A model generated the notes under the pieces. It ran no database searches. It was not told the DNA's origin and saw only the letters and a program-made list of their open reading frames with translations. The translations under genes and the position numbers were made by a program. DNA of 64,000 bases, from NCBI GenBank assembly GCA_904063045.1, contig CAJFCJ010000012.1:620001-684000 (forward strand). Reading direction: 5' to 3'. This DNA is from Dimorphilus gyrociliatus. Lineage: Eukaryota; Animalia; Annelida. Below are positions 3,342 to 54,937 of this stretch, in pieces; position 1 is the first letter of the stretch, and every line of letters begins with the position of its first letter.

Positions 3342-4500
3342 GGAATGTTTTTTTTTTGTTTTTTACATATAACATTATCCCGATTAATGGTTTCTTTTGC
3401 GGAATGAGATTATCGTTTGTTTTGCAAATAAACAAGTCTTAAATACAAATGATTATATAATGAATAGATGAACAGATAATAAGGAACACAAGCTATATGC
3501 ATTTTAATAAAAAATAAAAACCCATTTTAGGATACCAGTCTATTTCATTCATACAGCACCAATCTAATACTTTTTAATACTGAACGCTCGTACGGGTTTG
3601 ATACTAATCAGCACCATCTATCAGGTTAGGGAGCAACTTTCACACTACAAAATAGTTTTAAGCAGTTTTGGCCACTGGAAAGTGAAAAAACATAATAAAA
3701 TAAGGCTTTAAAACGAATTGGATAAACTTTCACTAATTTCCCATGCTTTTCCTTTGTAATGATGTTCATAATTTCAACTTAAAAAGCAGTTTTAAAAAAA
3801 AGAAAGTTAAAGGAAATCAATAGGAAATATAGAAAATTTTCCCAATTGTCTTATGTTAAATAGATAATAATAATAATAATAATACTACATTCACAACACT
3901 TAGTTACATAATTTTTCCTGTACAATTAATACTGAGTTCGGTAAAACGCAATGGGAGGAGAAATTTAAAGCTTGAATATGTCACGTGACTAGATCACTCA
4001 TCCAATCAACTAAGAGTATACTAAATAGCATAGGCAGTGTAACGCTGGTTTTTTGTCTTTACACTATCGGAAGACCTTTGGATTTTGTCCTTAACATAAA
4101 TGCATATGTCTGTACATTAATACATGAAATAAACAAATCAAAGTTTTAAATAGACTGGTATCCGACACCTGAGTTGGCACACAACCAAAAATAATGAAAT
4201 AAAAACAAAAGCAAGATGTTGCATAGATGACTAAATAGAACAAAAGTTAACACTCGACCAGCATTTTTTCATCAATAAAAATGACCACTAAAACAACAAC
4301 GAGCAGTGAGGCTTAAGTACAAGATTGTACGAGGTTGTGCTGTACAAAAATTGAAAGGAAGTACATAGATTATTTAATTGTATGCATATTTTTTTTTCTA
4401 CATATGGTACGCTTCAAAGAGGTAAATCCGAAATAACTATCAGCACGACCTTGCACTCGTCCTTTCATTCCGACTCACTGAATAACCAGAGAAAAGTAGG
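3342..4500 (-). promoter_or_regulatory. ZEB 3'UTR with clustered miRNA target sites
   Basis: The plus strand reproduces miRNA seeds, so the minus-strand mRNA carries the targets: miR-8/200 (3575, 3927), miR-29 (3555, 3610), miR-279 (3986), miR-34 (4033), miR-7 (4069), miR-277 (4097), miR-96 (4174), miR-67/307 (4180), miR-31 (4209), miR-153 (4219), miR-252 (4314), miR-92 offset (4451), miR-1 (3342). The distal UTR boundary is not known. Confidence 0.8.
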
Positions 4501-8075
<3,575 letters not shown>

Positions 8076-9644
8076 TCTCCGTCGTCTGTTCATATGAAAC
8101 AAAGAATAAAATTAATTAACTCTTTCTCAAAATATCTTCATTCTTATCATGAAAGAAAAAAGTTTATTCAATGGGTACTATTAACAGGACACACTTTACA
8201 AAAGTGCATTAAGCCGTTAATTAGTTTAAATTACAAAAATTCTCACTTTTAAATATTAATTAAGCGCAACAGATCAGATAGGAAGATTTTAAATATTCTG
8301 TACACCTTGGAAGATAGGATAGCACAGAAAGGAACCACCCTCTAGATGGCGTATTACATTTGAGGGAAAATATAATAATGTATTCGTAATGCGGATATAA
8401 ATTAGCAAAATCATAGTTGATTTATTAGCGACATAATCTGGAAGATTTTCTCTATAAAATATGGATATTTATCAAATATTATTACTGAAAAGCCATCTGC
8501 AGACGAAAGAGCTATCCTGTATCTAGGTAAATTGTCGCGAATGATTGCAAAAGAAAGTACCATTAAAATCGAATTTCTCTCGGAACCACCCTGCTGATAA
8601 AAAGAAAAACACAAGATACGAAAAGATCAATTTCCGATAGGCTAATTCCTTTCAAAATCCAAACAAACACACGAGAATCGAGAAAGTTAAGATAAGAGAC
8701 TTTCGAAAAAAGTGCCTGATAAAGATAATACAATCGTGTTATTCTACACCAAACAGATGCTTTTTTTCGTAGACAAAGAAGGGTAAAACTATTTCAGTCT
8801 TAAAAAATACTTAATAACAACACGCGCCATAAATCCTCACAGCAAACACAGTACAATACGAGAAAAATGAAAAGATTAACAACTAAAAGGTATATAAACC
8901 TGCTTCAAATTGTACAGGTGAAGTATGTTGAAAAGTAGCGACGACCATTTTCTATTCTACTATTTTTTCTATCTAGGCACCGAAATGCGGAGAAATCAAC
9001 GGGAAAACGCACGCTTCACCTTCTCTTCGAGGAAAATGACGACAAGAGTTCCCCGCTCAGGGGTTTTATAGCAAATGCTATTGGGTTTTTGCGAGAACGA
9101 ACTAACAGTTAAAACACGCCCACATCTATATACGCTTTCTTTAATACTATACCTGAAAGGTTTTGCTAGAGCGAACTAAGGTAGTTTAATTATGATACAG
9201 CTATACCGCTTTTTTCATCTATTTTATGTCACACAAAGGTAGCGGTAGAGAGTAGCGATTGGACAATCGATCAGGTAAAAATATCCAATCATAAAATACC
9301 TGGTTGATTGACATATAGGGCGGATCGAAATTTTTTATATTTTGCCAAGAAAGTGTTACTTATTTTTCGTTAAAGCTCGATATTGTTGTAAATTTATCAA
9401 ATTAAGATATAAGCTAAGTGAAGTATTACGCTTCAAGGAAAGATCGACTTGTATTTATTTATAGAATTTTTTCTTCTCATATATATGGACCGCTTGTGGT
9501 CCGCTTAATTGAGCGTAAAAATGTTTTAACATTCGTGCATCAAATATTTAAACGAGAGTATTTGGGACAATTATATAAAAAATATATAATTATTAAAATT
9601 ATACTTTTTATTAGTTTTGGAGATAAAGTAAATGAAGAGCGAGT

Positions 9645-9666: not shown

Positions 9667-12600
9667 AAAAAGGACCTAATTAAGTTTTTAACTTTAAACT
9701 GATGAATAGCTTAAATTATGCAATTACAGAGGTTTTTATACAAGTATGTTTTTTTTAAATAGACTGTAAATAATAACCTAAATGTTCTGTTATAAAGTGT
9801 TACTTTTGAAAATTTCTATCTATATAGTTAATTTATATGCAAAGCTCTGTATTTAATCAAGAGTCATCAGTCTCCCGTAGCAGTTGGGAATACAGCATGA
9901 ATTTTCAATGAATGAAATTAATACGTCTTTTTTCTTCAAATTACAACTGCGGCTTGTCTATATAACTCAATATTTTATCTTTCTATATATCCTATGATCA
10001 AATTACGAGAGTCTTGTTAATCTCAAGGATATAAAAGCCTATAAAGGAGAAACTATCATTAATATATAAAAGGCGTGATAAACCGTAAATTAATATATGA
10101 AAGCTGCTTTGCAGGGATAGAGCAGAGTACTTTCAGAATGCATTATACTTTACATTAATATTTTGTAAAAAACAACACTTTAAAGAAGATTTTAAAAGGT
10201 ATAAATGAGAGTTGTTTTTAAGAACATATCAAAATAGAAACGTATATAAAAAGACGATATAACCTTTCCGGACACCCCTTAATGCAAACGTTTGTAAATC
10301 GTCCTTTGTCGCGCACGTGCAAGTGGGAGTGGAGAATTTCTTGACAGTTCTCTATAAAACAAGGCAATGCTTTTTGCGACGATTTTTCGTCGTCTTGGTA
10401 ACTTCGATTTTTTCCTCTTTTGGAATCAATTAGCGCTCGCGCAAACAGGTTTTTGTTAAAACATCAAAAAACGCGACAATGATAAGAATCAACGATATAA
10501 CGGTGAAGTACTCTCTAATCGTTGACTTTCGCTCTTCAAAGTTGAATGCAATACAAACTTGGGGTGAGAGAAAATTTAACGAGAACGTGTCAATTGTTTT
10601 CATTTTGGTGCTTTCTTCATCTCTCATAGGACTTTCTAATCGGTGTTCTCTAATTTAATTTTTTTTTTAACTATAAAATATCAGCTTATGATTATCTTAT
10701 AAAAACATTAAAACAATATTGACGCAGGTGCTGCAACTATTAAGAATAAGGATAAATACAATTTTTACATTTGTAGGAATAAATCCATACCCTGAATAAA
10801 TACTGTTGAAACAAAGCCCTTATTTCCGCCATTAGGCCCACATATGACATCCATCAGGAACTGCACATTGTAAACAAAACAAGAATACAAAGCCTGATGG
10901 CGCCGCAATTAGCAGCAAATTTGTAAACCAACAAAACCTGACAAAAAGAGAATTAAAGTACAAAGAAAGGAATAAAGTGGTGAACAATTCGGATATTAAA
11001 TCGTGGCGACAAAAGTTTTCCGCATCATCACCAGCAGCCCTCTTTTTCTGAAAATCACTTTTCACCTTTAATTAAATTCGCGTCATCTACATACATCACT
11101 TTTCCATCAAAGCTATAAAGATCAAACGCGACGATTGTTTAACGAAACAATAGACGCCTTTGAACGTTCTCTGACGGGATTTTTCCTCAACCCACGTGCC
11201 AGATGTCCTAAGCTGCATCAAAGAAAACAAACGCCTGTTTGCATTTGACAAACTTTATATATGCGTCGACTGGCTTTAAGTGTATTGAGAAACGTGAGTA
11301 GAAATAACCATACACCTTCGATCATGAATAACATTGTAAAACGCTGATAAAAGTAGAGTAGAGCACGCTCAAAGAAAGTTTTTAGGGAATGGGGGGAAGG
11401 GAGGTCAACCTTTAATTAAAATTGTCAAAAGTTATCCTGAGGATTTATGCAACGCCAAACACATCTATGAGGCTTGACTAAAGTTAGACTAGCCATTAAA
11501 TGAATTGGAAAAATTGTGCAGCACCAATGATACAATAAATCCAAATCAACTCAAGAAAGCTAAGGCAATTTTACGGTTTCTTGTTCTTACGAGTTTCTTT
11601 GGGTATAATTTATAAGCCGAAATATTAAATGTATCGGAAATATGGTCACTTTGAAATTAGACATTATTCCAATTGCCTTCCTTAAATCTTAAAGCATGAC
11701 CAACTCTCAAAAAACTTTATGGGAAAACTTTCAGATTTAACCCCGAGTTGAAGGGTTTTAAGTAGCTCCAAACTGGTCTTTTGTTCGTGATTTTAGTCTT
11801 CGTACCGTGACGAAATGGAGGTAATATAGGAACCATCGGTCATTCTCTAACACTTGACCTTGAAATAAGGGTTAGACAAGGTCAAGATGACCATTGACGC
11901 CGTCCCATTGTGAACGCACGTGACCAGGTGTCAAAACGTTGATTGACTTACGTCGTTTACAGACCACATGAATATTAATGTTAAAGAGCAATTAAGGTTG
12001 CTTGAACAACGAGTTAGGAGCATACTTGAAAGAGGTAATTACAGGAAGTGCAGATCACGTGGCCGGAAGTATTTTGTAGCTATACAGGCACCAGTATTTG
12101 ACTGGTATAATTGTCGTCTTCCGTCCACAAGTCCATTCCTCTTTTTTACATTGTCGTTAATATAATCGTTCAATAATTTTTGTGATATTTCCATCAAAAA
12201 AATTTCTTTGACATTTTCATTGTTCAGAGTAATACGTCTTCCATTTGAACTTGTAAAAGGGGGCGTTATTTTGTCCGTTGTTTTTACTCTCTTAAACAAA
12301 TACATTTTTATGTGGGAAAAAGAAAAATTGATGAAAAGTGCGATTGGTAAAATTTGAATAAATATTGGCAAATTCGGTAAGAGTATCTATAAAAATGACA
12401 ATTTTAGTAAGAGAATTCTTTTACTTCAAAGCTTTAGTAACTTCAATAAAGAAAACCTCTTTTGTAAGGTTTACCAGAATCGATTTTTATCTGTCCTCTA
12501 ATCCGTAGAATTGATTTAATATTAAGTTAGAAAAATAATAAACCTCTCTAGACAATAATAAAGAAGTTCTCTACCTTTGACCTCATTCTTTTCTAATAAT

Positions 12601-52506: not shown

Positions 52507-54937
52507 ATGCGACTTCTACTTTTCAGTCTCTTTATATTTATTTGGCTTGCTAAAAAATATCAATCTACAAATTTCAAACTAGAATGGGATTATATAATTA
52601 TTGGAGCTGGACCCGCTGGCTTACAAATGGGATACTTTTTAAAAGAGTCAAAAAGAGATTATATAATAATTGAGAGGAATAACGAAAGTGGAAGTTTTTT
52701 TCAAAGATTCCCTCGCCATGATCGTTTGATTTCTATCAATAAAAGATTTACTGGTAAAATAAATCAAGAATTTAATTTCAGGCACGATTGGAATTCTCTG
52801 CTAACTCGAAATTTATTAAGATTTAGTGATTTTTCAACTGACTTTTTTCCAAGAAGAAAACAGATGAGAGATTATCTAAGTAATTATTCAAAAACTCATG
52901 ATTTGAATATTATTTACGGAGTAAATGTGCTCAATATTAGTAAAAATAGAGAAGAATTTCGAATGGAAGCTAATGATAAAATACTTAAATGTAAAAGTCT
53001 AATAATAGCTAGTGGATTAAGTAAACCTGTCTTACCGACTTTTGAAGGGAGTCAAGATATGATTGGATACGAGGAAATGCCCTTAGATGAAGATTTTTAT
53101 AAAGGCAAAGATGTCCTTATTCTTGGTAAATTTTAAATAATAACATCAAAGGAAATATCTAAAGACGCTCCACTATCGTCAATCTCTTTTAATTTTCTGT
53201 TTTAGGTCACGGAAATTCGGCTTTTGAAACAGCAAATGCGATTTATGAAAAAACAAATAAAGTTCATATTCTGGGTAGAAATAGAGTAAGACTCGCGTGG
53301 GAGACTCACTATGTAGGAGATATAAGGTTTCTAACACTTAATCTCTTTCCACTAAAAGATAAAATAATAATATCTATTGTTTTAATCATCATTAGAAGTG
53401 TATATAGTCATCTAATTGATACCTATCAATTAAAATCTTTGGATGGAATCTTGGAAGGGGAAATAAAAGATTTCAAATTAAAAAAGGTCAAGGATAAATT
53501 CTATTTCCAGACAGATAATCTGCCTGATACTATGGATAATTTTGCCCTAAGAGAAGGTTATGATATAGTAATAAGATGCTTGGGATTCAAATTTGATAAT
53601 AGTATCTTTTCTGAGTAAGTGCATACTCTTTTGTTATTAACCAATTTTCTTTTCTTTGCTTTCTATTTGTTTTTGTCCTGGTTTAAAAATAGACACGATT
53701 GACAGTTTTTCCTATTAACAATTTCTATTCCTCTATTGTTTCAATGATTATAAAAGGAATAAAAGAGAAAGGAGAGCAAGCCGAAAAAAAACACAATTAT
53801 AAAGTGTTATTTGTAAATAGGCTATTCTCTAAATAATAAAATATTATTAATTGTATATGATTATTATCTTCTTTTCTTTTCCCTCTAAAAAGCTTAATGT
53901 CACCAGCATTGACAAAAAGTGAAAAATATCCTGAAATAGATGATAAATTTCAATCAACAAACATTGAAAACCTCTATTTTATTGGAACAACTGCTCATTC
54001 TTTAGATTATAGAAGATCATCAGGAGGGTTTATTCATGGGTTTAGATATATGAGTAAGTATATATATTATATATTAATATAAATTAATATTTATGTATAG
54101 TCAATTATCTTTAACATTTTCTTTTCTTTCCCTTCCCCTTCCCTTGTATACTAGTCGAGAACTTTCATAAGAATCTTGAAAGGAAAAATCATAATACCCT
54201 TTGGCCTATTTCCACTTACAAATTAACAGAATTAATTACTGTCATTCTAAAGAGAATTAATGAAGTTAGTTCACTGTATCAAATGCACGGAGTTCTCGGT
54301 GATATAATAGCTATTGATAGGTAGGTGTTCTAAAGTGAGATGTAATTTATATCTCTAATTTTATTATTATTTCAGAGATAACAAACAATTTCATTACTTT
54401 GAAAATTATTTAATATCTAATTTGCATAATTTTGAAAATGTTACCGGTTATCCCATAAACGATGTATTAATTCTAGTATTAAATTATGGCAAAACGTTTA
54501 CAACACCCGGAAATGACGTTTTAAGAATAGACCGAGCTACTGGGGTCTTGGAGGAAGCTCATCTCAGTAATTTTCTTCATCCTCAGTTTTACTATTATGA
54601 AAAATTACCAACAAGTAAATTCATATATATATTTAATTTTCAATTACATTAGTGCTTACTAGACATTACGTTCATTCATACAGAAGGACGAATGCTGAAT
54701 AAACGTAGAGACGCTATCTTGCCATTGCCCGATAAGATACACTATATCTTAGAAGATTTTCACACAACGTGGACGTCTCCTACGACCCATATTCTCCCTC
54801 TTCGAAGATTTTTAGAAAATTGCACAAAAACAGATTTAAGACATTATAAGTCTAGTGATTGTTTTCTGTCGTCATTTGTTGATGGAACTTTTCCCATTGA
54901 TTGTATAAATTATCACCAAAGTTCATATATTGTATAG
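52507..54937 (+). CDS. FOXRED2: FAD-dependent oxidoreductase domain-containing protein 2
   Basis: Signal peptide, IIIGAGPAGLQ Rossmann motif, FPRHDRLISINKRFTG..RHDWNSLL, G-H-GNSAFETA..RLAWETHYVGDIR, TYQLKSLDG, LDYRRSSGGFIHGFRY and FLHP motifs over about 7 exons with short introns. Confidence 0.93.

Follow-up and report, generated by a model that had tools for sequence, protein, structure and literature searches.

In the window, as we call the whole 64-kb stretch of Dimorphilus gyrociliatus DNA that was analyzed, the minus strand from position 8089 to position 4504 encodes parts of a ZEB/zfh1-type protein, namely an N-terminal C2H2 finger cluster, a middle finger and homeodomain, a PLDLS (CtBP-type) motif and a C-terminal finger cluster. 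ZEB/zfh1 factors govern epithelial-mesenchymal and neural/muscle fate, and they are classic microRNA targets. The exons were searched singly. The last coding exon (4504 to 4733, minus strand) carries C-terminal zinc fingers 2 and 3 with the sequence hallmark of ZEB, and among its database matches were entries labelled zag-1-like and zinc finger homeobox protein 1; the reading frame ends at a TGA stop codon located at 4503 to 4501 on the same strand. The 90% cluster of the linker exon includes DgyrCDS8705 of D. gyrociliatus, which is 98 to 99% identical to the window exons, and we attribute the few differences to alignments running past the exon ends. A PDB sequence search with the last exon returned generic C2H2 matches only, and a search of representative sequences with the 188-aa zinc-finger exon was swamped by poly-zinc-finger proteins, making it useless for finding orthologues.

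The extent of the 3' untranslated region (3'UTR) can be judged from a related taxon. Contig L022 (Logan, SRR31837514; 3,379 nt) contains a 663-aa ZEB open reading frame, and its blocks match the window exons with the introns removed, indicating an origin from spliced RNA. The 3'UTR of this contig, at least 1,283 nt long, is collinear with the window from 4500 to approximately 3440, which gives 3440 to 4500 on the minus strand as the minimum extent of the ZEB 3'UTR; this tract is 86 to 91% invariant in three taxa except at about 3700 to 3900. Given the position of the TGA codon, the 22-nt stretch at 4209 to 4230 that is the subject of this work lies 271 to 292 nt downstream of the ZEB stop codon, and the exact 22-mer is found 353 nt after the stop codon of L022. 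Between the stop codon and the site there is a single poly(A)-type hexamer, an ATTAAA at 4373 to 4378, which is not conserved in the relatives. In L022 and in L016, a genomic contig of a second relative, an AT-rich, partly (TA)n insertion of approximately 70 to 120 nt replaces it (window 4350 to 4392), so that it does not represent a conserved poly(A) signal. The evidence that the site belongs to the 3'UTR of the ZEB mRNA, on the correct strand, is thus indirect in that it comes from the sequences of relatives, but it is nevertheless good.

The first-pass annotation had described 4209 to 4230 as a miR-31-like stretch with a G:U pair at nt 2, a bulged G, one mismatch and about 20 identical positions, and it had placed nt 1 to 8 of miR-153 at 4219 to 4226. 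Read directly, the plus strand at 4209 to 4230 is AAGCAAGATGTTGCATAGATGA, and TTGCATAG lies within it at 4219 to 4226. As the plus strand is the sense of both microRNAs, the predicted sites are confined to minus-strand RNA, and the minus strand is here the mRNA strand of the local ZEB gene. On that strand the 22-mer is 5'-UCAUCUAUGCAACAUCUUGCUU-3'. Its miR-153 portion, from 4226 to 4219, is CUAUGCAA, a canonical 8-mer with a match to nt 2 to 8 and an A opposite nt 1, located 275 nt past the stop codon. The observation itself is therefore confirmed.

Hybrid prediction with the species' own miR-31, which the annotation had proposed, gave a duplex of -26.7 kcal/mol, the value for the perfect complement being -42.9 kcal/mol. 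The pair table comprises 20 Watson-Crick pairs, the G:U at nt 2, the bulged G at nt 13/14 and a C.U mismatch at nt 20, in agreement with the earlier description. miR-31 nt 1 to 12 (with the G:U at nt 2), 14 to 19 and 21 to 23 are paired, and nt 9 to 12 all form Watson-Crick pairs, so that pairing spans nt 10 and 11. The stretch had been proposed to be a 3'-compensatory or highly complementary site at which the two microRNAs compete for one footprint. This proposal is partly supported, in that the imperfect seed is accompanied by substantial central and 3' pairing and the miR-153 8-mer lies inside the miR-31 site; action of miR-31 and competition are putative. The predicted pairing, contiguous over nt 3 to 12 and resumed at nt 14 to 19 and 21 to 23, even exceeds the 3'-compensatory class and has the geometry at nt 10 and 11 that is needed for slicing; any miR-31-guided cut would fall between residues 4219 and 4218. 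Seed binding is weakened by a wobble such as the one at nt 2, and slicing is disfavoured when the guide strand bulges at nt 13. Accessibility of the site is close to that of its surroundings, with an unpaired probability of 0.51 compared with 0.46 for the remaining UTR.

The overlap of the two sites has a simple origin, as both microRNAs contain the hexamer GCAUAG, at nt 14 to 19 of miR-31 and nt 3 to 8 of miR-153. Because of this common hexamer, any miR-153 8-mer pairs with miR-31 nt 11, 12 and 14 to 19. The clade-specific part of the miR-31 match is made up of the ten adjoining bases that pair with nt 1 to 10 and the three that pair with nt 21 to 23. Tracing the overlap to GCAUAG and recognizing the miR-153 site as the deeply conserved component (see below) are the points that go beyond the first-pass annotation.

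Both microRNAs are encoded in the species, with the sequences used in the first-pass annotation. The MirGeneDB entry for the species is genome-only, and both microRNAs are known here from their genes. The miR-31 21-mer has an exact match on another contig of the genome, within a 96-nt hairpin that folds with an energy of -39.7 kcal/mol (z -6.6 relative to shuffles) and matches the Rfam mir-72/mir-31 clan with an E value of 1.6e-10, below the gathering score. The 5' arm of the hairpin is AGGCAAGAUGUUGGCAUAGCUGA, the same as the miR-31 sequence of the annotation; absence or divergence of miR-31 in this species, which the annotation had named as an outcome that would count against its reading, is thus not what we found. 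The mir-153 precursor was identified at positions 1454 to 1528 of contig L003 by Rfam RF00650 with 55.7 bits (gathering score, 54), and its 3' arm is identical to the query. An Argonaute open frame of the species (L023) aligns to human AGO2 with an E value of 8e-236. Its catalytic tetrad is conserved, with D, E, D and H at the positions aligned to D597, E637, D669 and H807, which we take to be the catalytic residues of human AGO2.

We assessed how much of the miR-31 match could be due to chance. No other miR-31 duplex on either strand of the window is as stable, the next best reaching -22.6 kcal/mol. In the 1.1-kb UTR, 0 of 600 shuffled versions of miR-31 attained the duplex energy of the site, and with a vectorised pairing score 1 of 300 attained its score anywhere in 128 kb. 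A Gumbel extrapolation of the duplex energies gave a P value of approximately 0.002, which we judge to be a loose upper bound. Given the 8-mer, we calculated from base composition a probability of about 1e-6 for the ten-base match to miR-31 nt 1 to 10. The miR-31 match is far beyond chance for this UTR. At the scale of the genome, we estimate by extrapolation from the 128-kb shuffles that chance would produce about ten matches of this quality in 3'UTRs for approximately 100 microRNAs. A repeat or multicopy element was rejected as a source of the site, since the 16-nt core is unique and the surrounding 251 nt are likewise single-copy in the 77.9-Mb genome.

Two other sequences came up in these searches. 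The second-best miR-31 duplex, at 54481 to 54516 on the minus strand, pairs with the miR-31 seed through UUUUGCCA, nt 7 being in a G:U; it was set aside as a wobbled seed that had no further support. GGAAGAGGTTGCATAG, which matches the site core with two mismatches, occurs nine times on small contigs (G000:C64, C65, C68, C71, C74, C89 and C174) and probably represents a repeat family that has nothing to do with the site.

Conservation among close relatives was examined in a three-way comparison of the window, L016 and the spliced mRNA contig L022. A possible fourth related taxon (P0253/P0255) was left out, as its contig stops before the UTR. All 22 positions of the site are invariant across the three taxa, including the miR-153 8-mer. 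The site is part of a 27-nt invariant block (4209 to 4235, minus strand in mRNA sense) whose 3' edge is the very base that partners miR-31 nt 1. Conservation in the proximal UTR is lowest over the 30 nt beyond it, with 67% of positions invariant. Identity between the window and L016 is 25 to 60% in introns. Past the stop codon, it amounts to 91% at 3900 to 4500 (insertions unique to L016 excluded) and to 90 to 100% in 50-nt bins at 3550 to 3700, matching the level of the coding exons. The background against which the site must be judged is high. In the three taxa 86% of the window bases at 3900 to 4500 are invariant, perfect runs of 20 to 58 nt are common, and 10% of random 22-column windows in the UTR are as fully invariant as the site, 8 of whose 22 positions are already accounted for by miR-153. 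Against this background, the invariance of the site yields by our estimate a modest likelihood ratio of about 3, the miR-153 positions being discounted. Conservation in close relatives is thus consistent with a function of the miR-31 pairing, although weakly informative.

The same comparison brought out features elsewhere in the gene. Only 36% of positions are invariant across the three taxa at window 3700 to 3900, compared with approximately 90% in its flanks; the ZEB 3'UTR thus consists of constrained islands with a free spacer between them. On the minus strand, in an intron or upstream of the ZEB exons, noncoding blocks at window 9800 to 12150 are 88 to 100%, and mostly 96 to 100%, identical to L016 in 50-nt bins, with one short divergent patch at approximately 11350 to 11450, whereas the ordinary introns of the gene show the 25 to 60% identity given above. 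These blocks are candidate conserved noncoding, enhancer-like elements.

To look further back, we took a census of the 3' flanks of the ZEB last exon in nine lineages, i.e., the window and eight others represented by invertebrate contigs from metagenome and Logan assemblies, with fingers and homeodomain upstream where the contig reaches. These flanks are mutually unalignable. Within 1.5 kb, TATGCAA, the miR-153 7mer-A1 site, was found in six of the nine lineages (8 occurrences observed, 1.45 expected) and ranked second of 16,384 7-mers by lineage count; in four lineages the site lies 275 to 400 nt past the stop codon. CAGTATT and related words, which correspond to miR-8/200 and miR-279 and served as positive controls, were similarly enriched within 3 kb, and no enrichment was observed for the negative controls, reversed and sense-strand words, in the 1.5- and 3-kb flanks. 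TCTTGCC, the canonical miR-31 seed match, was weakly enriched within 3 kb (4 observed, 1.4 expected). No extended miR-31 match was found near the miR-153 site, or at the corresponding place, in the distant ZEB orthologues compared, and a literature search for a direct link between miR-31 and ZEB found none. The census suggests that control of ZEB by miR-153 is ancient and was retained across most of the invertebrate lineages sampled.

Other words recurred in these flanks. ATGTTGT is the 7-mer shared by the largest number of lineages, with seven of nine having it within 1.5 kb. UGUACAG occurs three times in the 3'UTR of the window on the minus strand, at 4346, 4116 and 3924, and the related TGTACAA and GTACAAT are among the 7-mers that recur in the largest numbers of ZEB flanks (five of nine lineages). 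Two flanks that are unrelated and unalignable harbour tandem pairs of TATGCAAAT spaced 19 to 31 nt apart, at +375/+394 after the stop codon in L011 and at +1260/+1291 in L019, and the second copy is GTATGCAAATG in both. They might form a cooperative pair of miR-153 sites.

We propose that the proximal 3'UTR of ZEB/zfh1, on the minus strand, harbours a composite element for microRNA binding. Its core would be the miR-153 8-mer, which is expected to give ordinary seed-mediated repression, and we consider it very probable, from the census and from the presence of the mir-153 precursor in the genome, that this site is functional and ancient. The flanks of the 8-mer appear to have been extended in D. 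gyrociliatus and its close relatives, so that the same 22 nt can pair with nearly the whole of miR-31. Such an extension would be easy to evolve because GCAUAG is common to nt 14 to 19 of miR-31 and nt 3 to 8 of miR-153. On balance, we lean towards the view that the miR-31 complementarity is a selected, clade-specific extension of the miR-153 site.

The main alternative to a selected extension is that the miR-153 8-mer alone is functional and that the resemblance to miR-31 is fortuitous, the flanks being kept on account of something else, for instance adjacent protein or microRNA sites. We regard this as a serious contender, if a less probable one. The shared hexamer by itself supplies eight of the miR-31 pairs, the miR-31 seed contains a G:U at nt 2, and the deeply conserved part of the element is the miR-153 7-mer, the miR-31 match being absent from distant orthologues. 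In addition, background invariance is 86%, perfect runs of 20 to 58 nt are many, and the look-elsewhere estimate permits chance matches genome-wide. What this alternative does not readily account for is the ten-base match to miR-31 nt 1 to 10, at about 1e-6 given the 8-mer, together with the outcome of the shuffles in the UTR (0 of 600) and the uniqueness of the core in the genome. Nor does it explain why the conserved block stops exactly at the partner of nt 1, where the 30 nt of lowest conservation in the proximal UTR begin. An origin involving no microRNA binding was also considered, in which the plus-strand 22-mer descends from a mir-31 gene, as a remnant or antisense copy, or the block binds an RNA-binding protein. 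The plus strand does have a sense similarity of 20 of 23 positions to mature miR-31, but the similarity is limited to the mature sequence, neither strand forms a hairpin (z -0.55 and +1.09 relative to shuffles), and the block sits in the transcribed, conserved 3'UTR of the opposite strand. In Rfam, no family reached the gathering score anywhere in the window, and around the site there was no relevant match at E values up to 10. We thus rejected a mir-31 precursor at the site, on the basis of the folding of both strands and of Rfam, and find such an origin highly improbable.

A further possibility concerns the consequence of miR-31 binding. The site might be a trigger of target-directed miR-31 degradation, lowering miR-31 where ZEB mRNA is abundant. 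There is a parallel in the orthologous gene family, as the 3'UTR of Drosophila zfh1 contains a validated extended site that triggers degradation of miR-12 (PMC10102002), and both genes thus have an unusually extensive microRNA-complementary site in their 3'UTR. Pairing with the 3' part of miR-31 is extensive, at nt 14 to 19 and 21 to 23, i.e., down to its last three nucleotides, and centrally paired targets sometimes induce degradation (PMC10899785). However, validated triggers have a canonical seed match and leave positions 9 and 10 unpaired (PMC10899785), whereas in the worm nt 2 forms a G:U, only nt 3 to 8 of the seed are Watson-Crick paired, and nt 9 to 12 are paired. The fly site also involves another microRNA, and in it a central loop separates the seed match from the 3' pairing; that of the worm is paired through the center and has a wobbled seed. 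Degradation of miR-31 therefore appears to us distinctly improbable.

Returning to the composite element, miR-31 would bind it through central and 3' pairing with an imperfect seed. Since nt 9 to 12 are paired and the Argonaute tetrad is kept, strong repression would be expected, possibly with cleavage opposite nt 10/11, and destruction of the microRNA is less expected than repression or cleavage. On geometric grounds, miR-31 and miR-153 would exclude each other from one mRNA molecule, since there is no room for two Argonaute complexes on the same 22 nt. That miR-31 occupies the site, what its binding leads to and whether the two microRNAs compete are matters of inference. One might go further and imagine a two-microRNA switch on ZEB, in which miR-31 brings about Argonaute cleavage opposite nt 10/11 (4219|4218), or is itself destroyed, and in which occupancy by miR-153 blocks this outcome and causes mild repression only; such a switch seems unlikely.

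The element can be compared with known systems. In the 3'-compensatory let-7 sites of lin-41, a seed bulge or G:U is offset by 3' pairing. The site described here has in common with them the seed imperfection and the 3' pairing, but it is continuous through the center, from nt 3 to nt 12. miR-196 has in HOXB8 a near-perfect site with a single G:U wobble, which leads to AGO2-mediated cleavage. Both that site and ours lie in the 3'UTR of a developmental transcription factor, are complementary to the microRNA over nearly its full length, contain a G:U within the seed region and are paired at nt 10 and 11. The miR-31 site differs in that its wobble falls at nt 2, a guide nucleotide is bulged at nt 13/14 and nt 20 is mismatched, and cleavage is here a possibility. 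With respect to miR-153, human ZEB2 is a target validated by reporter assays in human cells (PMC6859470), and the same microRNA family and gene family are thus connected by a seed-type 3'UTR site in vertebrates and, by prediction, in this annelid-type worm. The worm 8-mer is found 275 nt past the stop codon and is overlapped by a second, extended site.

Taken as a whole, the composite element would be genuine, though of a fairly common kind among microRNA control elements. Were the miR-153 site the only working part, it would amount to an ordinary conserved seed site. With its one predicted cleavage position and its separable mutations, it offers a precise and cheap experimental target. The miR-31 extension may illustrate how an ancient seed site can give rise to a new, extended one if a hexamer is common to two microRNAs. 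Should slicing or miR-31 degradation prove true, this would be the first natural site of either type described in a spiralian, and it would extend the precedent set by fly zfh1 of ZEB-family 3'UTRs that carry extended microRNA sites.
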